From NCBI GenBank assembly GCA_047495785.1, contig JBLDXI010000032.1:4439782-4503781 (forward strand): 64,000 nucleotides of DNA, given 5' to 3'. This DNA comes from Lepidodermella squamata (Eukaryota > Animalia > Gastrotricha). The position numbers were made by a program, and so were the translations under genes. Positions 15,800-64,000 of the stretch are shown piece after piece (positions within the stretch are counted from its first letter, which is position 1; each line of letters opens with the position of its first letter). Below the pieces are notes generated by a model. The model was not told the origin of the DNA and made no database searches. It worked only from the letters and a program-made list of their open reading frames with translations.

Positions 15800-16700
15800 T
15801 TAGTAGGCGAAGCCGTAACCAGCGTAGCCAAGACCGTTGACGCCATTGAGGCCAAGGCCGAGACCGTTGACGTTGTTGTAGCCACGGGCGTAGCCAGTCT
15901 GGTAGCCATAGCCAAGACCGTTGACACCGTTGAGGCCAAGACCGAGTCCGTTGACGCCGTTGACGCCGTTGACACCGTTGACGCCGTTGAGGCCAAGACC
16001 GTTGACGCGGTTGAGGCCGAGGCCAAGACCGAGTCCGTTGACGTTGTTGACGCCGTTGACGCCGTTGACACCGTAGACGCCGTTGACGCCGTTGACACCG
16101 TTGAGGCCGAGGCCAAGACCAAGACCGTTGACGTTGTTGACGCCGTTGACACCGTAGACACCGTTGACGTTGTTGACACGGTTAAGACCGAGGCCAAGGC
16201 CAAGACCGTTGACAGCATTGACACCGTTGACGCCATAGACACCGTTGTTGAGGCCGAGGCCATTCAGACCGTTGAGGCCATTGAAGCCAAGACCCTCGCG
16301 CTGACCAGCCTGAGCGCCGAAGAGGCCAGCCTGGGCACCAGAGGCCTGGTTAAGACCGAAGCTGTAAAATTAAACCGTTTGTTAATATTAAAGCTTGGAA
16401 TAAGAATGCAGCAGTATGCTGACAAAATCATATTCATGTGCCAAACCATGCAAAATTGGCCGATAAATTGTTAGATCAAAAAAACGATAAATTGTCGAAC
16501 CCCGAGTAACGTCATGATGAATTTTGCAAGTTTTCCATGATTTAACACAATCAACCAAGTACTTACTTGGTGTAAAGGGGAGCATAGCCATGGCCAGCAC
16601 CACGAACACCGAAGTTGTTTCCGTAGAAACCGTTGTTAAGACCAAGGATGTTGGCCTGGGCATAGCCGAAAAGGGCGACGGCGACGAGGAACTTGTACAT
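15800..16700 (-). CDS. Secreted (Gly-Val-Asn)n / GLG repeat protein, cluster gene 6 (~231 aa; exons 16700-16567, 16361-15800)
   Basis: Signal peptide MYKFLVAVALFGYAQA; phase-2 GTAAGT...TTTACAG intron; exon 2 (absent from the ORF track in this frame) reads NFGLNQASGAQAGLFGAQAGQREGLGFNGLNGLNG...GVNGVNGVN...GYAGYGFAY-stop; TATAAAA at ~16783-16789. Confidence 0.88.
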
Positions 16701-20377: not shown

Positions 20378-21131
20378 TTAGTTATCACCCCAACGGCCCC
20401 ATTGTCCGCGACCACCGCGATTCCAGCCTCCGTGGCCACCCTCACGGCGATTGTTCCAGCGACCTCCACGGCCTCCACGGCCTCCACGGTGGTCCTTGCG
20501 GCCCTTTCCTTCCCATTTGCCACCCCTGCGACCTCCACGGCGACCCTTGCCCCACTTGCCGCCCTTGCCGCCTTTACCGCCCTTGCGTCCACCGTGACGG
20601 CGGCCGAATGCACCATGACGGCCTCCGAATGGGCCCATGCCGCCGAATCCACCATGACGGCCACCGAATTGGCTCATGCCACCGAATCCACCATGACGGC
20701 CTCCGAATGGGCCCATTCCACCATGGCGGCCACCGAATCTGCCGGGACGGCCTCCGAAGGGACCTGGGAATCTACCATGGCCTCGTGAAAGACCTTTCTC
20801 ATCGGAATCGTCCTATTACAGAATGATAAATCTCAATTTTACAGCCAAAATATCAAGACACCTGACTTACATCGTCATCATCGCTGTCATCGCTGCTGTC
20901 ACTGCTGTCGCTGCTATCGCTATCATCGTCGCTATCGTCGTCGTTCCTATTGCCTCCACGACGGCCACCGAATCGACCGCCGAATCCTTTACCGCCAAAT
21001 GGACCGCCCCATGGGCCACCGCGGCCAACTTCGTTCTTTCCTCGCCATTCGTCGCCTCCACGACGACGTCCTGGCTCAGCCAAGGCGACTGCGAAGAGCG
21101 CGACAAGGATAGCAACTACGGCAAAGCGCAT
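20378..21131 (-). CDS. Secreted Gly/Arg/Lys-rich protein with an Asp/Ser block, cluster gene 9 (two coding exons)
   Basis: Signal peptide MRFAVVAILVALFAVALA; DDDSDDDSDSSDSSDSSDDSDDDD block; intron ~20870-20813; repeats GPFGGRHGGFGGM, GGK and RGG; TATATAA at ~21204-21210. Confidence 0.85.
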
Positions 21132-46846: not shown

Positions 46847-46931
46847 TAGGGTTAGGGTTAGGGTTAGGGTTAGGGTTAGGGTTAGGGTTAGGGTTAGGGT
46901 TAGGGTTAGGGTTAGGGTTAGGGTTAGGGTT
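46847..46931 (+). repeat. Telomeric repeat tract 1, (TTAGGG)~14
   Basis: Perfect TTAGGG hexamers with the G-rich strand running rightwards. Confidence 0.98.
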
Positions 46932-47267
46932 TTTAACTAATTTAATACAGACGAGCTGTAACCGGGGTTTCTCCTAAGAGAAACCAGCCGGGCCCTACCA
47001 TTACTCCTTTCAGGGCTGTTTCAGAGGTCTTGGCCGCAGAGATAATATTTGATAGAATCCTTGATTGGATTCTATGTTAAGTAAATGCAAGGCAATGCCT
47101 TGATTTGTAAATGAATGCAAGGCATTGCCTTGATTTATGAGTGATTTATAGGCCTCGGCCCATCACTTAGGAGCCTATGAAGGCTGAGATCACCATTAAG
47201 AGTGATCTGGTTTAACAAAAGTCCATAAAGGCTTTTTGTGATATCTCTCAGTGGTGTGGAAAACCAG

Positions 47268-47333
47268 GAGGTAGCCAGTTATCAGACGCGTTTCGCTACT
47301 TGGCTAAGGTAGCTCTTCAGTGATTTTTACCTC
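47268..47333 (-). ncRNA. Type I hammerhead ribozyme A
   Basis: gaggtaaaaATCA-CTGAAGA-GCTAC-cttagccaa-GTAGC-GAAA-CGCG-TC^TGATaactggctacctc; intact core; predicted cleavage between 47285 and 47284. Confidence 0.92.
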
Positions 47334-47345
47334 ACAAAATGAGAG

Positions 47346-47381
47346 AATGATTTCAGTCCTATATTATAACCTCTTTAAATA
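47346..47381 (-). promoter_or_regulatory. Putative Pol II core promoter of element A
   Basis: TATTTAAA at 47381-47374, 33 nt upstream of the initiator-like A in TGAAATCATT (47355-47346); same layout as element B. Confidence 0.6.
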
Positions 47382-47521
47382 GGGTCGTCGTTTGCCTTGT
47401 TGTTTATGTTTTATCGTACCAGATGTGGTGTCACGTGCATTTTCAATTGTGTATGTCCACGTGTTGTTCACGCTGAGCGAAGTTCAAAGTTATTTTTGTC
47501 ACTTCTTTGTTGTCCTGATTT

Positions 47522-48248
47522 GATCGATCTGGAACCTTTGTCATTGGCCGTACATGTTTTTTGACCACATATTCGTGATAAGCAGACTCGATTTGACTAT
47601 TTCCATGTGATTTATCGAGAAATGCCTGGAGATCCGAAGAATTATGAAATTATTTGAAATGCCAAACGGCAAATTTCGGAACGCAAAATAGGTCATTTGG
47701 GATCGATCTGGAACCTTTGTCATTGGCCGTACATGTTTTTTGACCACATATTCGTGATAAGCAGACTCGATTTGACTATTTCCATGTGATTTATCGAGAA
47801 ATGCCTGGAGATCCGAAGAATTATGAAATTATTTGAAATGCCAAACGGCAAATTTCGGAACGCAAAATAGGTCATTTGGGATCGATCTGGAACCTTTGTC
47901 ATTGGCCGTACATGTTTTTTGACCACATATTCGTGATAAGCAGACTCGATTTGACTATTTCCATGTGATTTATCGAGAAATGCCTGGAGATCCGAAGAAT
48001 TATGAAATTATTTGAAATGCCAAACGGCAAATTTCGGAACGCAAAATAGGTCATTTGGGATCGATCTGGAACCTTTGTCATTGGCCGTACATGTTTTTTG
48101 ACCACATATTCGTGATAAGCAGACTCGATTTGACTATTTCCATGTGATTTATCGAGAAATGCCTGGAGATCCGAAGAATTATGAAATTATTTGAAATGCC
48201 AAACGGCAAATTTCGGAACTGAAAATAGGTCATTTGGGATCGATCTGG
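47522..48248. repeat. 179-bp tandem satellite, four copies plus 11 bp
   Basis: Units begin GATCGATCTGGAACC at 47522, 47701, 47880, 48059 and (truncated) 48238; only a 2-nt difference seen, in copy 4. Confidence 0.97.
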
Positions 48249-48268
48249 GGTTAGGGTTAGGGTTAGGG

Positions 48269-48309
<41 letters not shown>

Positions 48310-48320
48310 GGTTAGTTAGG
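48248..48320 (+). repeat. Telomeric repeat tract 2, (TTAGGG)~11 with one TTTAGGG variant
   Basis: Direct reading; merges into GTTAGGGTTAGTTAGG, the start of element B. Confidence 0.97.
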
Positions 48321-48918
48321 AGAGAATTACCAGACAGGTAGCCTAAGCACCCCGGCAGTTAGCTCTAATGCTACTAGAGAGCCAGGCCTGCATTTCAATA
48401 GCTTTAGCCCTATCCGAGGATAGGGATAGGGATAGGGATAGGGATAGAGATGGAGATGGAGATAGAGGTGCAGGTTAAATTCACGGTTTTAACCGCCTCT
48501 GACATGACACTGTGCTATTCAATAGCAAGAACTCAATTACCGTCTCAAAAGGGTACACTTCTGATGTAGGGATGAGATGAGGTCGTGATAAAGATTCGAT
48601 TTATCAAGTCTCATGCCTCAACAACGCGTTCAATCCTTTCCCTTTTGGCTTCATTCAATGAGCCACAATTGTAAATTCTTTTATTACCATCTCGTAAATC
48701 TCTGGTAGGTAGGTGGATGGTTACAACTCACTAAACATTGTAAAAGCCACCCCTATAGGGAAGCAAATTACAAATGGCAACCCATATAGGGAAGCATGAC
48801 TGGAAAGGCCACCCATGAAGGGAAGCAGATACAAATAGCAGCCTTTGCAAGGCTCTCGATGTGGTTAATCGAAAATAATAAGCAAACACCCTGTAAACAG
48901 TGATCATTAATGACAAAT

Positions 48919-48990
48919 AGCAACAACCCGAAAAAAACGTCAGACCGGTTTCGCCTGTGGGTAGCAGGCTCATCAGTGACTTTCGTTGCT
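48919..48990 (-). ncRNA. Type I hammerhead ribozyme B, copy 1
   Basis: agcaacgaaaGTCA-CTGATGA-GCCTG-ctaccca-CAGGC-GAAA-CCGG-TC^TGACgtttttttcgggttgttgct; predicted cleavage between 48943 and 48942. Confidence 0.93.
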
Positions 48991-49017
48991 TTCTTTGCTA
49001 GAAATAAAAGCTGGATA

Positions 49018-49052
49018 AATGATTTCAATGCAGTTTTTAGTGTGCTTTTATA
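49018..49052 (-). promoter_or_regulatory. Putative Pol II core promoter of element B (repeated in every unit)
   Basis: TATAAAAG at 49052-49045, 32 nt upstream of the A in TGAAATCATT (49027-49018); upstream AAAATGGCGG and GCCACGTGGC. Confidence 0.65.
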
Positions 49053-50523
49053 ACAGAAGTAGCACCGCCATTTTTTTCCCTTTCTACTAGCGCCACGTGG
49101 CATTAAGGCGCGAGAATTCGACCTTGGACTTTGACCTTGCTCTATTTTATAGCTATAGAGATAGAGATAGAGATAGGGATAGGGATAGAGATAGAGATAG
49201 AGATATGGTTAGAGATGGGGATATGGATAGGGATAGAGTTAGGGATGAAACCCTAAAAACTCTCACATGTCGATCCGATGTTTCCTTTCGCGTGAATATC
49301 AAATAAGATCAGATCAATGGCTAGTTCACTCAGAGTTCTCCACGGTGTCGTGCACAATAACAGCAATGTTTATTTGCTTTACAACGATGATACCAGTTCG
49401 ATTCCAACAGCGAATCTCTCCACCCTTGTATTGTCTTCAGATATTTCCCTTGTTGTTGACCGATTACTAAATCACTCTCCGCGGAGTTGATTATCACAAC
49501 GCTGCATTTCCACGTCAGCAGTTAAGAACATGCTGACACTGATTAATCGTTTTGACCACTAATAGCAAAACAATAATTCTTCCGACGGCAAGTCACCGGA
49601 CTAGATCCGAGAAAGTATGTTCTAAGCTAGCTATCGTTGATCTTTTACGTCCAACGGGGATCCCTGATCACGTTCCGAGTCTAAGATTCCTGAGAAACGT
49701 GTTCATTCGAAGCGATGGAGTAGGCGATGCAACAAAGGAACTAGTAGAAGTTCATACGATTTAAACATGAGAATGCCACTAACTAAATTTAGGGCTCAGA
49801 ATGTGTGCCTGTCAGGAAATAAACTTGCAGCAGAAGGGAGGACCCATACGTTTCATTGAAAGTAGGCAAGGCCGCTCGTTTGCACCGTACTCATGACTCG
49901 AGCTCAAATGTTAGGGTTAGTTAGGAGAGAATTACCAGACAGGTAGCCTAAGCACCCCGGCAGTTAGCTCTAATGCTACTAGAGAGCCAGGCCTGCATTT
50001 CAATAGCTTTAGCCCTATCCGAGGATAGGGATAGGGATAGGGATAGGGATAGAGATGGAGATGGAGATAGAGGTGCAGGTTAAATTCACGGTTTTAACCG
50101 CCTCTGACATGACACTGTGCTATTCAATAGCAAGAACTCAATTACCGTCTCAAAAGGGTACACTTCTGATGTAGGGATGAGATGAGGTCGTGATAAAGAT
50201 TCGATTTATCAAGTCTCATGCCTCAACAACGCGTTCAATCCTTTCCCTTTTGGCTTCATTCAATGAGCCACAATTGTAAATTCTTTTATTACCATCTCGT
50301 AAATCTCTGGTAGGTAGGTGGATGGTTACAACTCACTAAACATTGTAAAAGCCACCCCTATAGGGAAGCAAATTACAAATGGCAACCCATATAGGGAAGC
50401 ATGACTGGAAAGGCCACCCATGAAGGGAAGCAGATACAAATAGCAGCCTTTGCAAGGCTCTCGATGTGGTTAATCGAAAATAATAAGCAAACACCCTGTA
50501 AACAGTGATCATTAATGACAAAT

Positions 50524-50595
50524 AGCAACAACCCGAAAAAAACGTCAGACCGGTTTCGCCTGTGGGTAGCAGGCTCATCAGTGACTTTCGTTGCT
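50524..50595 (-). ncRNA. Hammerhead ribozyme B, copy 2
   Basis: Same sequence as copy 1, +1605. Confidence 0.92.
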
Positions 50596-52128
50596 TTCTT
50601 TGCTAGAAATAAAAGCTGGATAAATGATTTCAATGCAGTTTTTAGTGTGCTTTTATAACAGAAGTAGCACCGCCATTTTTTTCCCTTTCTACTAGCGCCA
50701 CGTGGCATTAAGGCGCGAGAATTCGACCTTGGACTTTGACCTTGCTCTATTTTATAGCTATAGAGATAGAGATAGAGATAGGGATAGGGATAGAGATAGA
50801 GATAGAGATATGGTTAGAGATGGGGATATGGATAGGGATAGAGTTAGGGATGAAACCCTAAAAACTCTCACATGTCGATCCGATGTTTCCTTTCGCGTGA
50901 ATATCAAATAAGATCAGATCAATGGCTAGTTCACTCAGAGTTCTCCACGGTGTCGTGCACAATAACAGCAATGTTTATTTGCTTTACAACGATGATACCA
51001 GTTCGATTCCAACAGCGAATCTCTCCACCCTTGTATTGTCTTCAGATATTTCCCTTGTTGTTGACCGATTACTAAATCACTCTCCGCGGAGTTGATTATC
51101 ACAACGCTGCATTTCCACGTCAGCAGTTAAGAACATGCTGACACTGATTAATCGTTTTGACCACTAATAGCAAAACAATAATTCTTCCGACGGCAAGTCA
51201 CCGGACTAGATCCGAGAAAGTATGTTCTAAGCTAGCTATCGTTGATCTTTTACGTCCAACGGGGATCCCTGATCACGTTCCGAGTCTAAGATTCCTGAGA
51301 AACGTGTTCATTCGAAGCGATGGAGTAGGCGATGCAACAAAGGAACTAGTAGAAGTTCATACGATTTAAACATGAGAATGCCACTAACTAAATTTAGGGC
51401 TCAGAATGTGTGCCTGTCAGGAAATAAACTTGCAGCAGAAGGGAGGACCCATACGTTTCATTGAAAGTAGGCAAGGCCGCTCGTTTGCACCGTACTCATG
51501 ACTCGAGCTCAAATGTTAGGGTTAGTTAGGAGAGAATTACCAGACAGGTAGCCTAAGCACCCCGGCAGTTAGCTCTAATGCTACTAGAGAGCCAGGCCTG
51601 CATTTCAATAGCTTTAGCCCTATCCGAGGATAGGGATAGGGATAGGGATAGGGATAGAGATGGAGATGGAGATAGAGGTGCAGGTTAAATTCACGGTTTT
51701 AACCGCCTCTGACATGACACTGTGCTATTCAATAGCAAGAACTCAATTACCGTCTCAAAAGGGTACACTTCTGATGTAGGGATGAGATGAGGTCGTGATA
51801 AAGATTCGATTTATCAAGTCTCATGCCTCAACAACGCGTTCAATCCTTTCCCTTTTGGCTTCATTCAATGAGCCACAATTGTAAATTCTTTTATTACCAT
51901 CTCGTAAATCTCTGGTAGGTAGGTGGATGGTTACAACTCACTAAACATTGTAAAAGCCACCCCTATAGGGAAGCAAATTACAAATGGCAACCCATATAGG
52001 GAAGCATGACTGGAAAGGCCACCCATGAAGGGAAGCAGATACAAATAGCAGCCTTTGCAAGGCTCTCGATGTGGTTAATCGAAAATAATAAGCAAACACC
52101 CTGTAAACAGTGATCATTAATGACAAAT

Positions 52129-52200
52129 AGCAACAACCCGAAAAAAACGTCAGACCGGTTTCGCCTGTGGGTAGCAGGCTCATCAGTGACTTTCGTTGCT
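52129..52200 (-). ncRNA. Hammerhead ribozyme B, copy 3
   Basis: Same sequence as copy 1. Confidence 0.92.
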
Positions 52201-53733
52201 TTCTTTGCTAGAAATAAAAGCTGGATAAATGATTTCAATGCAGTTTTTAGTGTGCTTTTATAACAGAAGTAGCACCGCCATTTTTTTCCCTTTCTACTAG
52301 CGCCACGTGGCATTAAGGCGCGAGAATTCGACCTTGGACTTTGACCTTGCTCTATTTTATAGCTATAGAGATAGAGATAGAGATAGGGATAGGGATAGAG
52401 ATAGAGATAGAGATATGGTTAGAGATGGGGATATGGATAGGGATAGAGTTAGGGATGAAACCCTAAAAACTCTCACATGTCGATCCGATGTTTCCTTTCG
52501 CGTGAATATCAAATAAGATCAGATCAATGGCTAGTTCACTCAGAGTTCTCCACGGTGTCGTGCACAATAACAGCAATGTTTATTTGCTTTACAACGATGA
52601 TACCAGTTCGATTCCAACAGCGAATCTCTCCACCCTTGTATTGTCTTCAGATATTTCCCTTGTTGTTGACCGATTACTAAATCACTCTCCGCGGAGTTGA
52701 TTATCACAACGCTGCATTTCCACGTCAGCAGTTAAGAACATGCTGACACTGATTAATCGTTTTGACCACTAATAGCAAAACAATAATTCTTCCGACGGCA
52801 AGTCACCGGACTAGATCCGAGAAAGTATGTTCTAAGCTAGCTATCGTTGATCTTTTACGTCCAACGGGGATCCCTGATCACGTTCCGAGTCTAAGATTCC
52901 TGAGAAACGTGTTCATTCGAAGCGATGGAGTAGGCGATGCAACAAAGGAACTAGTAGAAGTTCATACGATTTAAACATGAGAATGCCACTAACTAAATTT
53001 AGGGCTCAGAATGTGTGCCTGTCAGGAAATAAACTTGCAGCAGAAGGGAGGACCCATACGTTTCATTGAAAGTAGGCAAGGCCGCTCGTTTGCACCGTAC
53101 TCATGACTCGAGCTCAAATGTTAGGGTTAGTTAGGAGAGAATTACCAGACAGGTAGCCTAAGCACCCCGGCAGTTAGCTCTAATGCTACTAGAGAGCCAG
53201 GCCTGCATTTCAATAGCTTTAGCCCTATCCGAGGATAGGGATAGGGATAGGGATAGGGATAGAGATGGAGATGGAGATAGAGGTGCAGGTTAAATTCACG
53301 GTTTTAACCGCCTCTGACATGACACTGTGCTATTCAATAGCAAGAACTCAATTACCGTCTCAAAAGGGTACACTTCTGATGTAGGGATGAGATGAGGTCG
53401 TGATAAAGATTCGATTTATCAAGTCTCATGCCTCAACAACGCGTTCAATCCTTTCCCTTTTGGCTTCATTCAATGAGCCACAATTGTAAATTCTTTTATT
53501 ACCATCTCGTAAATCTCTGGTAGGTAGGTGGATGGTTACAACTCACTAAACATTGTAAAAGCCACCCCTATAGGGAAGCAAATTACAAATGGCAACCCAT
53601 ATAGGGAAGCATGACTGGAAAGGCCACCCATGAAGGGAAGCAGATACAAATAGCAGCCTTTGCAAGGCTCTCGATGTGGTTAATCGAAAATAATAAGCAA
53701 ACACCCTGTAAACAGTGATCATTAATGACAAAT

Positions 53734-53805
53734 AGCAACAACCCGAAAAAAACGTCAGACCGGTTTCGCCTGTGGGTAGCAGGCTCATCAGTGACTTTCG
53801 TTGCT
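53734..53805 (-). ncRNA. Hammerhead ribozyme B, copy 4
   Basis: Same sequence as copy 1. Confidence 0.92.
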
Positions 53806-55338
53806 TTCTTTGCTAGAAATAAAAGCTGGATAAATGATTTCAATGCAGTTTTTAGTGTGCTTTTATAACAGAAGTAGCACCGCCATTTTTTTCCCTTTCT
53901 ACTAGCGCCACGTGGCATTAAGGCGCGAGAATTCGACCTTGGACTTTGACCTTGCTCTATTTTATAGCTATAGAGATAGAGATAGAGATAGGGATAGGGA
54001 TAGAGATAGAGATAGAGATATGGTTAGAGATGGGGATATGGATAGGGATAGAGTTAGGGATGAAACCCTAAAAACTCTCACATGTCGATCCGATGTTTCC
54101 TTTCGCGTGAATATCAAATAAGATCAGATCAATGGCTAGTTCACTCAGAGTTCTCCACGGTGTCGTGCACAATAACAGCAATGTTTATTTGCTTTACAAC
54201 GATGATACCAGTTCGATTCCAACAGCGAATCTCTCCACCCTTGTATTGTCTTCAGATATTTCCCTTGTTGTTGACCGATTACTAAATCACTCTCCGCGGA
54301 GTTGATTATCACAACGCTGCATTTCCACGTCAGCAGTTAAGAACATGCTGACACTGATTAATCGTTTTGACCACTAATAGCAAAACAATAATTCTTCCGA
54401 CGGCAAGTCACCGGACTAGATCCGAGAAAGTATGTTCTAAGCTAGCTATCGTTGATCTTTTACGTCCAACGGGGATCCCTGATCACGTTCCGAGTCTAAG
54501 ATTCCTGAGAAACGTGTTCATTCGAAGCGATGGAGTAGGCGATGCAACAAAGGAACTAGTAGAAGTTCATACGATTTAAACATGAGAATGCCACTAACTA
54601 AATTTAGGGCTCAGAATGTGTGCCTGTCAGGAAATAAACTTGCAGCAGAAGGGAGGACCCATACGTTTCATTGAAAGTAGGCAAGGCCGCTCGTTTGCAC
54701 CGTACTCATGACTCGAGCTCAAATGTTAGGGTTAGTTAGGAGAGAATTACCAGACAGGTAGCCTAAGCACCCCGGCAGTTAGCTCTAATGCTACTAGAGA
54801 GCCAGGCCTGCATTTCAATAGCTTTAGCCCTATCCGAGGATAGGGATAGGGATAGGGATAGGGATAGAGATGGAGATGGAGATAGAGGTGCAGGTTAAAT
54901 TCACGGTTTTAACCGCCTCTGACATGACACTGTGCTATTCAATAGCAAGAACTCAATTACCGTCTCAAAAGGGTACACTTCTGATGTAGGGATGAGATGA
55001 GGTCGTGATAAAGATTCGATTTATCAAGTCTCATGCCTCAACAACGCGTTCAATCCTTTCCCTTTTGGCTTCATTCAATGAGCCACAATTGTAAATTCTT
55101 TTATTACCATCTCGTAAATCTCTGGTAGGTAGGTGGATGGTTACAACTCACTAAACATTGTAAAAGCCACCCCTATAGGGAAGCAAATTACAAATGGCAA
55201 CCCATATAGGGAAGCATGACTGGAAAGGCCACCCATGAAGGGAAGCAGATACAAATAGCAGCCTTTGCAAGGCTCTCGATGTGGTTAATCGAAAATAATA
55301 AGCAAACACCCTGTAAACAGTGATCATTAATGACAAAT

Positions 55339-55410
55339 AGCAACAACCCGAAAAAAACGTCAGACCGGTTTCGCCTGTGGGTAGCAGGCTCATCAGTGAC
55401 TTTCGTTGCT
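55339..55410 (-). ncRNA. Hammerhead ribozyme B, copy 5
   Basis: Same sequence as copy 1. Confidence 0.92.
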
Positions 55411-56943
55411 TTCTTTGCTAGAAATAAAAGCTGGATAAATGATTTCAATGCAGTTTTTAGTGTGCTTTTATAACAGAAGTAGCACCGCCATTTTTTTCCC
55501 TTTCTACTAGCGCCACGTGGCATTAAGGCGCGAGAATTCGACCTTGGACTTTGACCTTGCTCTATTTTATAGCTATAGAGATAGAGATAGAGATAGGGAT
55601 AGGGATAGAGATAGAGATAGAGATATGGTTAGAGATGGGGATATGGATAGGGATAGAGTTAGGGATGAAACCCTAAAAACTCTCACATGTCGATCCGATG
55701 TTTCCTTTCGCGTGAATATCAAATAAGATCAGATCAATGGCTAGTTCACTCAGAGTTCTCCACGGTGTCGTGCACAATAACAGCAATGTTTATTTGCTTT
55801 ACAACGATGATACCAGTTCGATTCCAACAGCGAATCTCTCCACCCTTGTATTGTCTTCAGATATTTCCCTTGTTGTTGACCGATTACTAAATCACTCTCC
55901 GCGGAGTTGATTATCACAACGCTGCATTTCCACGTCAGCAGTTAAGAACATGCTGACACTGATTAATCGTTTTGACCACTAATAGCAAAACAATAATTCT
56001 TCCGACGGCAAGTCACCGGACTAGATCCGAGAAAGTATGTTCTAAGCTAGCTATCGTTGATCTTTTACGTCCAACGGGGATCCCTGATCACGTTCCGAGT
56101 CTAAGATTCCTGAGAAACGTGTTCATTCGAAGCGATGGAGTAGGCGATGCAACAAAGGAACTAGTAGAAGTTCATACGATTTAAACATGAGAATGCCACT
56201 AACTAAATTTAGGGCTCAGAATGTGTGCCTGTCAGGAAATAAACTTGCAGCAGAAGGGAGGACCCATACGTTTCATTGAAAGTAGGCAAGGCCGCTCGTT
56301 TGCACCGTACTCATGACTCGAGCTCAAATGTTAGGGTTAGTTAGGAGAGAATTACCAGACAGGTAGCCTAAGCACCCCGGCAGTTAGCTCTAATGCTACT
56401 AGAGAGCCAGGCCTGCATTTCAATAGCTTTAGCCCTATCCGAGGATAGGGATAGGGATAGGGATAGGGATAGAGATGGAGATGGAGATAGAGGTGCAGGT
56501 TAAATTCACGGTTTTAACCGCCTCTGACATGACACTGTGCTATTCAATAGCAAGAACTCAATTACCGTCTCAAAAGGGTACACTTCTGATGTAGGGATGA
56601 GATGAGGTCGTGATAAAGATTCGATTTATCAAGTCTCATGCCTCAACAACGCGTTCAATCCTTTCCCTTTTGGCTTCATTCAATGAGCCACAATTGTAAA
56701 TTCTTTTATTACCATCTCGTAAATCTCTGGTAGGTAGGTGGATGGTTACAACTCACTAAACATTGTAAAAGCCACCCCTATAGGGAAGCAAATTACAAAT
56801 GGCAACCCATATAGGGAAGCATGACTGGAAAGGCCACCCATGAAGGGAAGCAGATACAAATAGCAGCCTTTGCAAGGCTCTCGATGTGGTTAATCGAAAA
56901 TAATAAGCAAACACCCTGTAAACAGTGATCATTAATGACAAAT

Positions 56944-57015
56944 AGCAACAACCCGAAAAAAACGTCAGACCGGTTTCGCCTGTGGGTAGCAGGCTCATCA
57001 GTGACTTTCGTTGCT
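56944..57015 (-). ncRNA. Hammerhead ribozyme B, copy 6
   Basis: Same sequence as copy 1. Confidence 0.92.
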
Positions 57016-58548
57016 TTCTTTGCTAGAAATAAAAGCTGGATAAATGATTTCAATGCAGTTTTTAGTGTGCTTTTATAACAGAAGTAGCACCGCCATTTTT
57101 TTCCCTTTCTACTAGCGCCACGTGGCATTAAGGCGCGAGAATTCGACCTTGGACTTTGACCTTGCTCTATTTTATAGCTATAGAGATAGAGATAGAGATA
57201 GGGATAGGGATAGAGATAGAGATAGAGATATGGTTAGAGATGGGGATATGGATAGGGATAGAGTTAGGGATGAAACCCTAAAAACTCTCACATGTCGATC
57301 CGATGTTTCCTTTCGCGTGAATATCAAATAAGATCAGATCAATGGCTAGTTCACTCAGAGTTCTCCACGGTGTCGTGCACAATAACAGCAATGTTTATTT
57401 GCTTTACAACGATGATACCAGTTCGATTCCAACAGCGAATCTCTCCACCCTTGTATTGTCTTCAGATATTTCCCTTGTTGTTGACCGATTACTAAATCAC
57501 TCTCCGCGGAGTTGATTATCACAACGCTGCATTTCCACGTCAGCAGTTAAGAACATGCTGACACTGATTAATCGTTTTGACCACTAATAGCAAAACAATA
57601 ATTCTTCCGACGGCAAGTCACCGGACTAGATCCGAGAAAGTATGTTCTAAGCTAGCTATCGTTGATCTTTTACGTCCAACGGGGATCCCTGATCACGTTC
57701 CGAGTCTAAGATTCCTGAGAAACGTGTTCATTCGAAGCGATGGAGTAGGCGATGCAACAAAGGAACTAGTAGAAGTTCATACGATTTAAACATGAGAATG
57801 CCACTAACTAAATTTAGGGCTCAGAATGTGTGCCTGTCAGGAAATAAACTTGCAGCAGAAGGGAGGACCCATACGTTTCATTGAAAGTAGGCAAGGCCGC
57901 TCGTTTGCACCGTACTCATGACTCGAGCTCAAATGTTAGGGTTAGTTAGGAGAGAATTACCAGACAGGTAGCCTAAGCACCCCGGCAGTTAGCTCTAATG
58001 CTACTAGAGAGCCAGGCCTGCATTTCAATAGCTTTAGCCCTATCCGAGGATAGGGATAGGGATAGGGATAGGGATAGAGATGGAGATGGAGATAGAGGTG
58101 CAGGTTAAATTCACGGTTTTAACCGCCTCTGACATGACACTGTGCTATTCAATAGCAAGAACTCAATTACCGTCTCAAAAGGGTACACTTCTGATGTAGG
58201 GATGAGATGAGGTCGTGATAAAGATTCGATTTATCAAGTCTCATGCCTCAACAACGCGTTCAATCCTTTCCCTTTTGGCTTCATTCAATGAGCCACAATT
58301 GTAAATTCTTTTATTACCATCTCGTAAATCTCTGGTAGGTAGGTGGATGGTTACAACTCACTAAACATTGTAAAAGCCACCCCTATAGGGAAGCAAATTA
58401 CAAATGGCAACCCATATAGGGAAGCATGACTGGAAAGGCCACCCATGAAGGGAAGCAGATACAAATAGCAGCCTTTGCAAGGCTCTCGATGTGGTTAATC
58501 GAAAATAATAAGCAAACACCCTGTAAACAGTGATCATTAATGACAAAT

Positions 58549-58620
58549 AGCAACAACCCGAAAAAAACGTCAGACCGGTTTCGCCTGTGGGTAGCAGGCT
58601 CATCAGTGACTTTCGTTGCT
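58549..58620 (-). ncRNA. Hammerhead ribozyme B, copy 7
   Basis: Same sequence as copy 1. Confidence 0.92.
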
Positions 58621-60153
58621 TTCTTTGCTAGAAATAAAAGCTGGATAAATGATTTCAATGCAGTTTTTAGTGTGCTTTTATAACAGAAGTAGCACCGCCA
58701 TTTTTTTCCCTTTCTACTAGCGCCACGTGGCATTAAGGCGCGAGAATTCGACCTTGGACTTTGACCTTGCTCTATTTTATAGCTATAGAGATAGAGATAG
58801 AGATAGGGATAGGGATAGAGATAGAGATAGAGATATGGTTAGAGATGGGGATATGGATAGGGATAGAGTTAGGGATGAAACCCTAAAAACTCTCACATGT
58901 CGATCCGATGTTTCCTTTCGCGTGAATATCAAATAAGATCAGATCAATGGCTAGTTCACTCAGAGTTCTCCACGGTGTCGTGCACAATAACAGCAATGTT
59001 TATTTGCTTTACAACGATGATACCAGTTCGATTCCAACAGCGAATCTCTCCACCCTTGTATTGTCTTCAGATATTTCCCTTGTTGTTGACCGATTACTAA
59101 ATCACTCTCCGCGGAGTTGATTATCACAACGCTGCATTTCCACGTCAGCAGTTAAGAACATGCTGACACTGATTAATCGTTTTGACCACTAATAGCAAAA
59201 CAATAATTCTTCCGACGGCAAGTCACCGGACTAGATCCGAGAAAGTATGTTCTAAGCTAGCTATCGTTGATCTTTTACGTCCAACGGGGATCCCTGATCA
59301 CGTTCCGAGTCTAAGATTCCTGAGAAACGTGTTCATTCGAAGCGATGGAGTAGGCGATGCAACAAAGGAACTAGTAGAAGTTCATACGATTTAAACATGA
59401 GAATGCCACTAACTAAATTTAGGGCTCAGAATGTGTGCCTGTCAGGAAATAAACTTGCAGCAGAAGGGAGGACCCATACGTTTCATTGAAAGTAGGCAAG
59501 GCCGCTCGTTTGCACCGTACTCATGACTCGAGCTCAAATGTTAGGGTTAGTTAGGAGAGAATTACCAGACAGGTAGCCTAAGCACCCCGGCAGTTAGCTC
59601 TAATGCTACTAGAGAGCCAGGCCTGCATTTCAATAGCTTTAGCCCTATCCGAGGATAGGGATAGGGATAGGGATAGGGATAGAGATGGAGATGGAGATAG
59701 AGGTGCAGGTTAAATTCACGGTTTTAACCGCCTCTGACATGACACTGTGCTATTCAATAGCAAGAACTCAATTACCGTCTCAAAAGGGTACACTTCTGAT
59801 GTAGGGATGAGATGAGGTCGTGATAAAGATTCGATTTATCAAGTCTCATGCCTCAACAACGCGTTCAATCCTTTCCCTTTTGGCTTCATTCAATGAGCCA
59901 CAATTGTAAATTCTTTTATTACCATCTCGTAAATCTCTGGTAGGTAGGTGGATGGTTACAACTCACTAAACATTGTAAAAGCCACCCCTATAGGGAAGCA
60001 AATTACAAATGGCAACCCATATAGGGAAGCATGACTGGAAAGGCCACCCATGAAGGGAAGCAGATACAAATAGCAGCCTTTGCAAGGCTCTCGATGTGGT
60101 TAATCGAAAATAATAAGCAAACACCCTGTAAACAGTGATCATTAATGACAAAT

Positions 60154-60225
60154 AGCAACAACCCGAAAAAAACGTCAGACCGGTTTCGCCTGTGGGTAGC
60201 AGGCTCATCAGTGACTTTCGTTGCT
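60154..60225 (-). ncRNA. Hammerhead ribozyme B, copy 8
   Basis: Same sequence as copy 1. Confidence 0.92.
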
Positions 60226-61540
60226 TTCTTTGCTAGAAATAAAAGCTGGATAAATGATTTCAATGCAGTTTTTAGTGTGCTTTTATAACAGAAGTAGCAC
60301 CGCCATTTTTTTCCCTTTCTACTAGCGCCACGTGGCATTAAGGCGCGAGAATTCGACCTTGGACTTTGACCTTGCTCTATTTTATAGCTATAGAGATAGA
60401 GATAGAGATAGGGATAGGGATAGAGATAGAGATAGAGATATGGTTAGAGATGGGGATATGGATAGGGATAGAGTTAGGGATGAAACCCTAAAAACTCTCA
60501 CATGTCGATCCGATGTTTCCTTTCGCGTGAATATCAAATAAGATCAGATCAATGGCTAGTTCACTCAGAGTTCTCCACGGTGTCGTGCACAATAACAGCA
60601 ATGTTTATTTGCTTTACAACGATGATACCAGTTCGATTCCAACAGCGAATCTCTCCACCCTTGTATTGTCTTCAGATATTTCCCTTGTTGTTGACCGATT
60701 ACTAAATCACTCTCCGCGGAGTTGATTATCACAACGCTGCATTTCCACGTCAGCAGTTAAGAACATGCTGACACTGATTAATCGTTTTGACCACTAATAG
60801 CAAAACAATAATTCTTCCGACGGCAAGTCACCGGACTAGATCCGAGAAAGTATGTTCTAAGCTAGCTATCGTTGATCTTTTACGTCCAACGGGGATCCCT
60901 GATCACGTTCCGAGTCTAAGATTCCTGAGAAACGTGTTCATTCGAAGCGATGGAGTAGGCGATGCAACAAAGGAACTAGTAGAAGTTCATACGATTTAAA
61001 CATGAGAATGCCACTAACTAAATTTAGGGCTCAGAATGTGTGCCTGTCAGGAAATAAACTTGCAGCAGAAGGGAGGACCCATACGTTTCATTGAAAGTAG
61101 GCAAGGCCGCTCGTTTGCACCGTACTCATGACTCGAGCTCAAATGTTAGGGTTAGTTAGGAGAGAATTACCAGACAGGTAGCCTAAGCACCCCGGCAGTT
61201 AGCTCTAATGCTACTAGAGAGCCAGGCCTGCATTTCAATAGCTTTAGCCCTATCCGAGGATAGGGATAGGGATAGGGATAGGGATAGAGATGGAGATGGA
61301 GATAGAGGTGCAGGTTAAATTCACGGTTTTAACCGCCTCTGACATGACACTGTGCTATTCAATAGCAAGAACTCAATTACCGTCTCAAAAGGGTACACTT
61401 CTGATGTAGGGATGAGATGAGGTCGTGATAAAGATTCGATTTATCAAGTCTCATGCCTCAACAACGCGTTCAATCCTTTCCCTTTTGGCTTCATTCAATG
61501 AGCCACAATTGTAAATTCTTTTATTACCATCTCGTAAATC

Positions 61541-63983
61541 TCTGGTAATTCTCTCCTAACTAACCCTAACATTTGAGCTCGAGTCATGAGTACGGTGCAA
61601 ACGAGCGGCCTTGCCTACTTTCAATGAAACGTATGGGTCCTCCCTTCTGCTGCAAGTTTATTTCCTGACAGGCACACATTCTGAGCCCTAAATTTAGTTA
61701 GTGGCATTCTCATGTTTAAATCGTATGAACTTCTACTAGTTCCTTTGTTGCATCGCCTACTCCATCGCTTCGAATGAACACGTTTCTCAGGAATCTTAGA
61801 CTCGGAACGTGATCAGGGATCCCCGTTGGACGTAAAAGATCAACGATAGCTAGCTTAGAACATACTTTCTCGGATCTAGTCCGGTGACTTGCCGTCGGAA
61901 GAATTATTGTTTTGCTATTAGTGGTCAAAACGATTAATCAGTGTCAGCATGTTCTTAACTGCTGACGTGGAAATGCAGCGTTGTGATAATCAACTCCGCG
62001 GAGAGTGATTTAGTAATCGGTCAACAACAAGGGAAATATCTGAAGACAATACAAGGGTGGAGAGATTCGCTGTTGGAATCGAACTGGTATCATCGTTGTA
62101 AAGCAAATAAACATTGCTGTTATTGTGCACGACACCGTGGAGAACTCTGAGTGAACTAGCCATTGATCTGATCTTATTTGATATTCACGCGAAAGGAAAC
62201 ATCGGATCGACATGTGAGAGTTTTTAGGGTTTCATCCCTAACTCTATCCCTATCCATATCCCCATCTCTAACCATATCTCTATCTCTATCTCTATCCCTA
62301 TCCCTATCTCTATCTCTATCTCTATAGCTATAAAATAGAGCAAGGTCAAAGTCCAAGGTCGAATTCTCGCGCCTTAATGCCACGTGGCGCTAGTAGAAAG
62401 GGAAAAAAATGGCGGTGCTACTTCTGTTATAAAAGCACACTAAAAACTGCATTGAAATCATTTATCCAGCTTTTATTTCTAGCAAAGAAAGCAACGAAAG
62501 TCACTGATGAGCCTGCTACCCACAGGCGAAACCGGTCTGACGTTTTTTTCGGGTTGTTGCTATTTGTCATTAATGATCACTGTTTACAGGTGTTTGCTTA
62601 TTATTTTCGATTAACCACATCGAGAGCCTTGCAAAGGCTGCTATTTGTATCTGCTTCCCTTCATGGGTGGCCTTTCCAGTCATGCTTCCCTATATGGGTT
62701 GCCATTTGTAATTTGCTTCCCTATAGGGGTGGCTTTTACAATGTTTAGTGAGTTGTAACCATCCACCTACCTACCAGAGATTTACGAGATGGTAATAAAA
62801 GAATTTACAATTGTGGCTCATTGAATGAAGCCAAAAGGGAAAGGATTGAACGCGTTGTTGAGGCATGAGACTTGATAAATCGAATCTTTATCACGACCTC
62901 ATCTCATCCCTACATCAGAAGTGTACCCTTTTGAGACGGTAATTGAGTTCTTGCTATTGAATAGCACAGTGTCATGTCAGAGGCGGTTAAAACCGTGAAT
63001 TTAACCTGCACCTCTATCTCCATCTCCATCTCTATCCCTATCCCTATCCCTATCCCTATCCTCGGATAGGGCTAAAGCTATTGAAATGCAGGCCTGGCTC
63101 TCTAGTAGCATTAGAGCTAACTGCCGGGGTGCTTAGGCTACCTGTCTGGTAATTCTCTCCTAACTAACCCTAACATTTGAGCTCGAGTCATGAGTACGGT
63201 GCAAACGAGCGGCCTTGCCTACTTTCAATGAAACGTATGGGTCCTCCCTTCTGCTGCAAGTTTATTTCCTGACAGGCACACATTCTGAGCCCTAAATTTA
63301 GTTAGTGGCATTCTCATGTTTAAATCGTATGAACTTCTACTAGTTCCTTTGTTGCATCGCCTACTCCATCGCTTCGAATGAACACGTTTCTCAGGAATCT
63401 TAGACTCGGAACGTGATCAGGGATCCCCGTTGGACGTAAAAGATCAACGATAGCTAGCTTAGAACATACTTTCTCGGATCTAGTCCGGTGACTTGCCGTC
63501 GGAAGAATTATTGTTTTGCTATTAGTGGTCAAAACGATTAATCAGTGTCAGCATGTTCTTAACTGCTGACGTGGAAATGCAGCGTTGTGATAATCAACTC
63601 CGCGGAGAGTGATTTAGTAATCGGTCAACAACAAGGGAAATATCTGAAGACAATACAAGGGTGGAGAGATTCGCTGTTGGAATCGAACTGGTATCATCGT
63701 TGTAAAGCAAATAAACATTGCTGTTATTGTGCACGACACCGTGGAGAACTCTGAGTGAACTAGCCATTGATCTGATCTTATTTGATATTCACGCGAAAGG
63801 AAACATCGGATCGACATGTGAGAGTTTTTAGGGTTTCATCCCTAACTCTATCCCTATCCATATCCCCATCTCTAACCATATCTCTATCTCTATCTCTATC
63901 CCTATCCCTATCTCTATCTCTATCTCTATAGCTATAAAATAGAGCAAGGTCAAAGTCCAAGGTCGAATTCTCGCGCCTTAATG
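61541..63983 (+). mobile_element. Inverted arm of the element B array (~1.5 units)
   Basis: Reverse complement of the array, starting at the TCTGGTA microhomology (61541-61547); 1-bp deletion near 62590; diverges into other sequence at 63984. Confidence 0.9.
62490..62561 (+). ncRNA. Hammerhead ribozyme B, copy 9 (inverted arm)
   Basis: GTCACTGATGAGCCTGCTACCCACAGGCGAAACCGGTCTGAC read directly on the + strand; predicted cleavage after 62537. Confidence 0.93.
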
Positions 63984-64000
63984 ACTCTCACGAGATGTGT

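Follow-up and report, generated by a model that had tools for sequence, protein, structure and literature searches.

How Penelope-like retroelements come to form tandem copies, and what role their hammerhead ribozymes play, are open questions, and both are raised by a chromosome end at which identical ribozyme-bearing units follow directly upon telomere repeats. If the start of copying was fixed there by a telomere primer, the phase of the template is known, and different templates would leave different marks. Cleaved linear monomers would give 638-bp stubs ending at the ribozyme cut site, circles would give clonal arrays of any length, uncleaved multimers would transmit the order of variants in a master array, and expansion at the DNA level would generate gradients of divergence along the array. 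The units in question form array B, located in a 64-kb window (the whole stretch of DNA analyzed). The reading preferred here, with a probability of about 0.6 given the sequence features described below, is that array B is related to Penelope-like elements but non-autonomous and non-coding, that it resembles a retrozyme, and that it was copied onto the chromosome end through priming by the telomeric G-overhang. Most known chains of ribozyme-bearing retroelements attached to telomeres come from bdelloid rotifers, fungi, and protists; on this reading the locus would extend such chains to non-coding dependants and to a host whose telomere repeat is TTAGGG.

Anatomy of the chromosome end

The inner telomere tract (46847..46931, + strand) consists of 85 nt of TAGGGT/TTAGGG repeats and follows unique, gene-bearing sequence. 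As TTAGGG reads 5' to 3' toward array B, the array lies distal to the tract, and genes are found only on the opposite, proximal side of the tracts. The neighbor of the telomeric chain is a gene for an animal-type four-domain voltage-gated channel; a 678-aa open reading frame of a neighboring gene had no match in the contig collection.

Between the inner tract and array B lies element A (46932..48247, RNA sense on the − strand), which is non-coding and gave no match in a Pfam search. It is composed of a 590-nt 3' module that carries a hammerhead and folds with a z-score of −6.6, followed toward the RNA 5' side by 4.1 copies of a 179-nt repeat (47522-48247) in which no tRNA-like units were found. 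Element A is truncated at 48247 and re-capped with new telomere repeats from 48248 onward (ctgg|ggttaggg), these forming the second telomere tract (48248..48304, + strand). The sequences of A and B are unrelated apart from the ribozyme, and neither has fragments elsewhere in the window outside its own copies.

The forward part of array B (48305..61547, RNA sense on the − strand) is made up of 8.25 units of 1605 nt. Self-comparison of these units over 13,243 nt at period 1605 gives 0 mismatches, an identity that holds even in microsatellite tracts, in line with the impression of an earlier, sequence-only reading of this DNA that the units are identical. The unit codes for no protein: its longest open reading frame, of 111 aa, had no match in the contig collection, and a Pfam search returned low-complexity noise only, with no family match. 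Exact-pattern scans of metagenome contigs, one with the 29-mer that follows the motif described next and one with the hammerhead and a free loop, likewise gave no match.

Each unit contains one copy of the motif GTTAGGGTTAGTTAGG, as had been claimed; nine copies lie on the + strand and two on the − strand, in the inverted tail of the array; the chance expectation for the motif is 0. The first copy (48305..48320, + strand; CCUAACUAACCCUAAC in the RNA) recurs every 1605 nt. Within it lies the sole telomeric match of at least 11 nt in the B unit, a feature that appears in only 4 of 2000 shuffled units. The array starts as GTTAGGGTTAG(TTAGG), right after the TTAGGG tract. Its periodicity begins exactly at 48305, since base 48304 is a telomeric G and the equivalent base of the unit, 49909, is a T; the telomeric register of the second tract nevertheless runs on to 48315, within the first unit. 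Together these observations indicate a seamless fusion with a breakpoint that is ambiguous within 48305-48315. The sequence-only reading had described a seamless fusion to a pure TTAGGG tract, of which the seamlessness is borne out and the purity is not, because one extra T at 48289 makes the tract read as 41 + 27 nt. The junction is given as assembled; the sole public run with the B unit (X1, DNA-like) is stored as k-mer contigs, in which 48239-48321 is skipped as repeat.

Nor does the array keep a single orientation up to the end of the window, the strand flipping at 61547|61548. The joint (61541..61547) is a 7-nt microhomology, TCTGGTA, whose complement is found at 61170-61176, 366 nt upstream. 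The inverted piece that follows (61548..63983, RNA sense on the + strand) comprises 1.5 units with one hammerhead (core at 62504) and a CCC run near 62589 that is one C shorter, which reduces the spacing to 1604. Its outer boundary corresponds to unit phase 49101, away from the motif. Unrelated sequence (63984..64000) then continues past the window edge, so that the distal end of array B is a strand flip followed by unrelated sequence, with no telomere.

The predicted hammerhead ribozymes of the two elements

In the first B unit, the predicted minimal hammerhead occupies 48939..48980 on the − strand, with C17 at 48943 and a predicted cut at 48943|48942. It combines helix I (GUCA/UGAC), the core CUGAUGA (48976-48970), helix II (GCCUG/CAGGC), GAAA, and a palindromic helix III (ACCGGU). 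There is one per unit: core starts fall at 48976 + n × 1605 (n = 0-7), giving eight in forward units and one more in the inverted piece. The hammerhead of element A (47281..47324, − strand) has the core CUGAAGA, helix II GCUAC/GUAGC, and a palindromic helix III ACGCGU, with a predicted cut at 47285|47284, 353 nt from the telomere junction. Between the A and B hammerheads, covariation is seen in all three helices, and cofolding of the B hammerhead as a dimer forms a 6-bp intermolecular helix III.

These assignments come from a hand-written structural descriptor with shuffle controls, which finds 10 matches in the window, all of them in A or B, and 0 in 20 shuffles. An Rfam search over 44-64 kb (E ≤ 1) reported no hammerhead; when the Rfam hammerhead models were applied to a 111-nt stretch, the cores could be aligned but scored 15-18 bits, below threshold, and helix III was deleted. 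Judged by sequence and predicted pairing, both ribozymes are of the Penelope-like minimal type, in that each has the core CUGANGA...GAAA, the G10.1-C11.1 pair, helix I, and a palindromic 15.x/16.x stretch permitting dimer formation, with no helix III hairpin. In the monomer defined by the B ribozyme, the motif occupies nt 623-638, placing it 622-637 nt from the predicted cut, close to the separation of about 640 nt estimated earlier, and the descriptor finds no hammerhead core adjoining the motif.

Proposed priming at the overhang and the shape of the template

In the mechanism that would best account for this arrangement, the single-stranded TTAGGG overhang pairs with the only telomere-complementary site in the RNA, 5'-CUAACCCUAAC-3' within CCUAACUAACCCUAAC, and a reverse transcriptase supplied in trans extends the paired overhang. 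The enzyme would most likely be an endonuclease-less, telomerase-related member of the Penelope-like group encoded elsewhere in the genome. The first motif copy (48305..48320) would then mark the place at which the G-overhang paired, over 11 contiguous bp, and copying began. Because this start is internal to the monomer and the product is scarless across eight ribozyme sites, the template is likely to have been longer than one unit, whether as an uncleaved multimeric transcript, a circularized monomer, or a series of end-to-end template jumps. Unequal exchange may later have altered the copy number.

Several features favor overhang priming. The G-strand repeats read toward the array, and the hammerheads and the C-rich motif of both A and B are carried by the strand that is the complement of the extended G-strand, which is the polarity that such priming requires. 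The array starts at the unit's sole telomeric 11-mer, a coincidence with a chance of about 1 in 100 were the phase random. The order of tract, element A cut short at a random point, healing telomere tract, and array B matches the layout of Athena/Terminon chains (PMC8557442, PMC6431247). In the contigs of run X1, at least two other families have the motif region together with about 35 nt on the RNA 3' side of the start site; a module common to other families fits internal initiation on a recognized module, a mode of initiation demonstrated by biochemical means for one Penelope-like element (PMC11167929). Inverted, 5'-truncated copies placed head to head typify Penelope-like insertions (PMC8557442), and the inverted B copy, which resembles one, counts for assignment to such elements. 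The zero differences across 11.6 kb of repeated copying are compatible with a polymerase error rate of up to about 1e-4. Other features count against priming. No reverse transcriptase was found in the 64-kb window, the ribozymes lie 622 nt (B) and 353 nt (A) from the telomere-complementary site, unlike those of Athena/Terminons, and the array finishes with a strand flip and then unrelated sequence, the outer boundary of the inverted piece lying off the motif. Moreover, a DNA-based event could likewise have been guided by 11 nt of homology.

The sequence-only reading went further in proposing that the hammerhead cuts once per unit, that the 1605-nt monomer circularizes, and that the overhang primes rolling-circle reverse transcription producing the whole array in one event. 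Its priming component, that of a G-strand on minus-sense RNA, is in agreement with the polarity, phase, and chain layout; its circular template sits poorly with the uncleaved RNA of element A and with the predicted fold, and is considered unlikely. A circle would explain the perfect, scarless periodicity over eight cut sites with no variation among units even in microsatellites, as well as the start site internal to the monomer. The route from hammerhead cleavage through circular RNA and more-than-unit reverse transcription to tandem copies was proposed for Penelope-like elements in 2014; a single minimal hammerhead requires a partner for cleavage, which would make a circle of one monomer stable (PMC4209133), and hammerhead repeats of animals do yield circular RNAs, some of more than 1000 nt (PMC7229834). 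In run X1 the unit has a k-mer depth of about 232 and a related 4.9-kb contig one of 36, which is also weakly in favor of a circle in that nothing points to a second large master array. Nevertheless, a circle, an uncleaved multimer, and a later amplification of DNA would look alike in the sequence. The copy of element A passes its own ribozyme site into repeats without a ribozyme, from which it appears that A was reverse-transcribed through its hammerhead from uncleaved linear RNA, and that such RNA was thus used as a template at this same chromosome end. Minimal Penelope-like hammerheads cleave poorly in vitro (PMC4209133), and an anole element is templated, again in vitro, mainly by unprocessed RNA, with RNA-seq lacking cleaved ends (PMC11167929). 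Known retrozyme circles are highly self-paired (PMC7229834), but the predicted folding of the B RNA stays at the level of shuffled sequences, with z-scores of −0.25 for the circular form and of −1.2 and +0.8 for the two halves, and without the compact fold of viroid-like or retrozyme-like RNAs, and the B unit is 4-10 times the typical length of an animal retrozyme. The phase of array B is equally predicted by an uncleaved multimer with internal initiation or by serial template jumps, and equally by a single retro-addition with unequal exchange or by break-induced copying from the 11-nt homology. A linear, uncleaved multimer is a tentative choice for the source of the eight-fold tandem state; one short retro-addition followed by expansion at the DNA level is a somewhat doubtful one, and circular RNA is more doubtful still.

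Explanations that dispense with an RNA template for the array must also be considered. A TTAGGG 3' end, eroded or normal, might have invaded an already existing B array or an extrachromosomal B DNA circle at the 11-nt site, initiating break-induced or rolling-circle replication, or a single unit might have been expanded by unequal sister-chromatid exchange, as in yeast Y' elements; a DNA circle or unequal recombination was also the alternative named in the sequence-only reading. Either would predict the same phase and orientation of the junction; a recent DNA-level amplification would leave identical units, and the fold-back at 61547, with its microhomology of 7 nt, has a form typical of replication-based rearrangement. 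Break-induced replication is, moreover, thought to be promoted by Terminon chains (PMC6431247). Yet a homology of 11 nt would be very little for strand invasion, the first B copy would still have to reach a telomere, the k-mer depth of the unit gives no hint (weak as this is) of a second donor array, and an origin in DNA leaves unexplained both the polarity of ribozyme and C-rich motif in two neighboring elements, as overhang priming needs, and the location of the motif in a module conserved across other families; this origin is accordingly judged improbable. An artefact, in which a small template, circular or repeated, was concatenated during whole-genome amplification or the units were collapsed, expanded, or homogenized in assembly and polishing, with chimeric joins at microhomology for the junction and the flip, is much less probable again. 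An inverted join with microhomology and a short spacer is the classic form of a multiple-displacement chimera. The join here shows a 7-nt microhomology and a short spacer, the absolute identity of 8.25 units is unusual, the single homopolymer-length difference is confined to the inverted piece, and the sole run with the B unit may be the source data of the assembly. On the other side, a depth of 232 is within about 1.5-fold of that expected from 9.75 assembled copies, if the related contig of depth 36 is near single copy; assemblers do not join on 11 nt, so that the junction must be crossed by one read or more; and a chain in which element A was truncated and then healed by telomerase makes biological sense. 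Telomeric retroelements are known to form head-to-tail arrays (PMC6431247), which could suggest that a full-length linear element with the motif at the end of its RNA was added in eight separate events, each time onto the previous copy. This is scarcely credible: the eight junctions do not differ by a single base, neither 5' truncation nor variable telomerase-added repeats occur between units (the real tracts here are 85 and 68 nt), and the end of the previous unit (..CAAAT) is not complementary to the motif.

Comparison with known systems

Under the preferred reading of overhang priming, the closest relatives of this arrangement are telomeric Penelope-like elements. Those deficient in endonuclease form telomeric chains and head-to-tail arrays (PMC8557442, PMC6431247). 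Like Athena, Coprina, and Terminon elements, array B joins G-strand telomere repeats with its RNA 3' end proximal (the junction at 48305 lies within GTTAGGGTTAG), has a short reverse-complement telomeric stretch as a pairing site, and carries a minimal hammerhead on the RNA-sense strand. Their 5'-truncated copies re-capped with telomere repeats find a counterpart in element A but not in B, which ends in a strand flip. The reverse transcriptase that they encode is of the Penelope clade and has no GIY-YIG endonuclease, whereas A and B code for neither a reverse transcriptase nor any other protein, which leaves B at most the role of a non-autonomous dependant. Further, the Athena/Terminon ribozyme lies immediately upstream of the telomere-complementary stretch (PMC6431247), rather than at the 622 nt of B or the 353 nt of A; B units are separated by the built-in 16-nt motif alone, without added telomere repeats; and the host repeat is TTAGGG, the complements reported from rotifers being (ACACCC)n/(TCACCC)n.

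Animal non-LTR retrozymes, which have type I hammerheads and circular RNA, share with B a non-coding, tandem organization with one hammerhead in each unit. They are thought to derive from Penelope-like terminal repeats and to be mobilized by Penelope-like/Terminon enzymes (PMC7229834, PMC7761336, bioRxiv 10.64898/2026.07.22.740005). The B unit, at 1605 nt, is longer than their roughly 150-450 nt, its hammerhead is of the minimal, helix III-less rather than the canonical type I form, and its RNA lacks the strong self-pairing of retrozyme RNA; a defined telomere-complementary start and a telomeric location are features of B described for retrozymes in none of the literature examined. The PAc element offers a different parallel. 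Its copying starts, as that of B would, within the template RNA rather than at the 3' end, the template extends past the start, a tandem organization is transcribed through, and most copying is from uncleaved RNA (PMC11167929). PAc possesses an endonuclease and a start site lacking homology to its target, whereas the primer for B would be the natural chromosome end, to which the start site is complementary.

Yeast Y' elements are subtelomeric tandem units with very short telomere-like tracts between them that can amplify by recombination or circles. They have a helicase open reading frame, variable internal telomere tracts, and no ribozyme; in B there is no helicase open reading frame, the unit junctions are all identical, and a hammerhead is present.

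The copying proposed for B would resemble that of telomerase and the rolling-circle reverse transcription carried out by the bacterial defense enzymes DRT2 and DRT10, in that a telomerase-related enzyme repeatedly copies one RNA into tandem DNA. It would differ from them in the 1605-nt length of its repeat and in taking mobile-element RNA as its template. At 11 nt, the pairing site CUAACCCUAAC is as long as the template of a telomerase. Were a hammerhead-processed, circularized 1605-nt RNA to have served as an endless, overhang-primed template for a telomerase-related Penelope-like reverse transcriptase, an unlikely case, the result would be a telomere-targeted retrozyme, in effect a naturally occurring telomerase whose circular template measures 1.6 kb, joining ribozyme circles, the formation of Penelope-like tandems, and chromosome-end extension in a TTAGGG animal.

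Layout of the chromosome end

Ordinary genes, one of them represented by exons of a four-domain voltage-gated channel, occur in the first 46.8 kb. They are followed by an inner telomere tract of 85 nt of TTAGGG-type repeats (46847-46931), by element A, a minus-strand hammerhead element (46932-48247), by a second TTAGGG tract from 48248, and by array B (48305-61547), which comprises 8.25 tandem units of 1605 nt. As TTAGGG reads 5' to 3' rightwards, the chromosome must have ended on that side, with every block distal to the preceding one. The tract before B, described as pure in the sequence-only reading, is largely so, except for one extra T between runs of 41 and 27 nt. At 1-21000, several ORF-rich stretches carry short coding repeats of the Gly/Leu/Asn type (periods 9-90 nt, e.g. 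15827-16271 and 20590-20722) and resemble a family of repetitive protein genes adjoining the chromosome end, whose products are probably secreted or structural.

The period of array B holds over 13,243 nt with zero mismatches, and the identity extends into (GATAGG)n/(GATAGA)n tracts and 31-nt repeats inside every unit. Every unit has a single copy of a telomere-complementary 16-mer, GTTAGGGTTAGTTAGG, for which 0 occurrences in the window are expected and which is absent outside the units; its first 11 nt are the unit's sole telomeric match of at least 11 nt, and such a match was found in 4 of 2000 shuffled units. The periodicity starts exactly at this motif, and base 48304 is a telomeric G where the unit has a T, so that unit 1 is joined to the telomere tract within the motif. 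A random array phase would fall there with a chance of about 1 in 100. The observation is solid, and the identity of the units, the motif in each of them and the fusion at the motif all stand as first described. The longest ORF of B is 111 aa, and a protein-domain search of B gave no match.

The 11-nt RNA pairing site, CUAACCCUAAC (48305-48315), agrees in length and register with the vertebrate telomerase RNA template region; one in six registers would match by chance. The GATAGG/GATAGA tracts (48418-48467, 49155-49246 and in later units) read CCCUAU/CUCUAU in RNA, one base off the telomere complement CCCUAA, and a small inverted pair TTAGGG...CCCTAA lies at 49238-49256. Both may be remnants of telomere-complementary stretches that have decayed.

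Array B has no terminal telomere within the window. At 61547/61548 the strand flips via a 7-nt microhomology, TCTGGTA, whose complement lies 366 nt upstream, and 1.5 inverted units follow, in which a CCC run is shorter by one C. The inverted piece breaks off at unit phase 49101, away from the motif, where it joins unrelated sequence (63983/63984), and the window ends 17 nt on. The flip fits snap-back self-priming of the nascent strand, an end-to-end fusion, an amplification or assembly chimera, or a head-to-head inverted truncated copy, of a kind typical of Penelope-like insertions (PMC8557442). The 48305 junction, the copy number and the flip are as in the assembly; the k-mer contigs of run X1, a single public run containing B, skip the junction as a repeat. 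K-mer depth in that run is 232 for the B unit versus 36 for a related 4.9-kb contig. If that contig is near single copy, the depth of B roughly matches the 9.75 assembled copies and gives no hint of another large array.

Hammerhead ribozymes and element A

A descriptor for helix-III-less hammerheads (CUGANGA, helix II of at least 4 bp, GAAA, a palindrome, H and a 4-bp helix I) identified 10 sites in the window and 0 in 20 shuffles: one per B unit (minus strand), one in the inverted tail (plus) and one in element A (minus). The predicted cut in B falls between 48943 and 48942, which makes the motif nt 623-638 of the ribozyme-defined monomer and bears out the distance of ~640 nt proposed earlier. 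Sequence comparison of A and B revealed nothing in common beyond the hammerhead, which covaries between them in all helices (B versus A: helix I, GUCA/UGAC and AUCA/UGAU; helix II, GCCUG/CAGGC and GCUAC/GUAGC; helix III palindrome, ACCGGU and ACGCGU). Dimer cofolding of the B hammerhead gives a 6-bp intermolecular helix III, and Rfam hammerhead models align the cores with helix III deleted and scores far below threshold. The motif is a hammerhead of the minimal, dimer-dependent kind known from Penelope-like elements (PMC4209133).

Many other run X1 contigs, of many families and with different flanks, match within 48906-48990 and have the 50-nt hammerhead core of B with a few changes; the depth of this core, about 1380 versus 232 for the B unit, points to a ribozyme family that is spread widely through the genome. 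On the minus strand, 70-180 nt upstream of the hammerhead, two TATA-like boxes in RNA sense, GCTATAAAATAG (~49143-49154) and GTTATAAAAGC (~49045-49056), may form an internal promoter whose leader would be removed by the ribozyme.

Element A, a second non-coding hammerhead element unrelated to B, is attached to the inner telomere tract. Its RNA-3' module (46925-47330, minus, from hammerhead to telomere junction) folds as a series of near-perfect hairpins, with a minimum free energy of -128.9 kcal/mol versus -92.7 in shuffles (z -6.6); B has nothing comparable. The last of its 179-nt repeats shows a 2-nt difference at 48220-48221. The element is cut off at an arbitrary point (..gatctgg/ggttaggg) and TTAGGG resumes at 48248; the truncated end was healed by telomerase before B was added.

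Proposed priming and candidate templates

The start phase, the strand polarity and the anatomy of the chain are best explained, with a probability of about 0.6, by telomere-primed reverse transcription, as the sequence-only reading had proposed; it would have begun at a telomere-complementary site that is both internal and conserved. In run X1 at least two other families (depth 36 and 72; B, 232) have the motif region 49875-49939 with a few changes, and what they share reaches ~35 nt beyond the start site towards the RNA 3' end. A conserved module spanning that site fits internal initiation, which has been demonstrated biochemically for an anole Penelope-like element (PMC11167929).

The logic of the sequence-only reading holds up to a certain point: priming at the motif on a cleaved linear monomer would yield a 638-nt copy only, so the eight seamless cut sites need either a longer-than-unit template or later DNA amplification. 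The circular B RNA invoked in the same proposal would supply such a template. It belongs to a set of three or four sub-models still in play, has a low probability, and is singled out by no observation. Copying of element A, at the same end, went on past the ribozyme site of A and into a ribozyme-free 179-nt repeat (4.1 copies), so that its template was uncleaved linear RNA; the anole element likewise used mainly unprocessed RNA, with cleaved ends absent in RNA-seq (PMC11167929), and minimal hammerheads cut poorly in vitro (PMC4209133). Animal retrozyme circles are reported to be highly self-paired (PMC7229834), and the 3' module of A is strongly structured (z -6.6), but B RNA folds no more stably than its dinucleotide shuffles (z -0.25 for the circle, -1.2 and +0.8 for the halves). 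The same phase and orientation would result if a strand invaded at the 11-nt homology and break-induced copying ensued, or if unequal exchange expanded a single short retro-addition. That 11.6 kb of repeated copying shows no difference is compatible with an error rate of up to about 1e-4 (P = 0.31), and the identity of the units argues against a sloppy enzyme only.

Ribozyme cleavage, circle ligation and more-than-unit reverse transcription into head-to-tail copies were proposed for Penelope-like elements in 2014 (PMC4209133), and the same cleavage-circle-tandem scheme has been repeated for animal retrozymes (bioRxiv 10.64898/2026.07.22.740005). No paper describing a telomere-primed version was found in the literature searched, and that version would be new. 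At the B locus the question of the template becomes testable.

Comparison with telomeric Penelope-like elements

Endonuclease-deficient Penelope-like elements (Athena, Coprina and Terminons) use short telomeric stretches in reverse complement, together with hammerhead motifs, to attach to G-rich overhangs that are exposed, and their copies are typically 5'-truncated, telomere-recapped and arranged in chains and head-to-tail arrays (PMC8557442, PMC6431247). The A-B chain has the same anatomy and layout, the ribozyme-sense strand of both A and B being complementary to the extended G-strand. It departs from them in that B encodes no reverse transcriptase and in that the ribozyme, adjacent to the pairing site in those elements, lies 622 nt from it in B and 353 nt from the telomere-complementary site in A. 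On this combination B and A are read as non-autonomous dependants of an endonuclease-deficient Penelope-like enzyme. In this reading B, non-coding and retrozyme-like, depends on telomeric Penelope-like elements of a host with TTAGGG telomeres and is a new variation on a known type.
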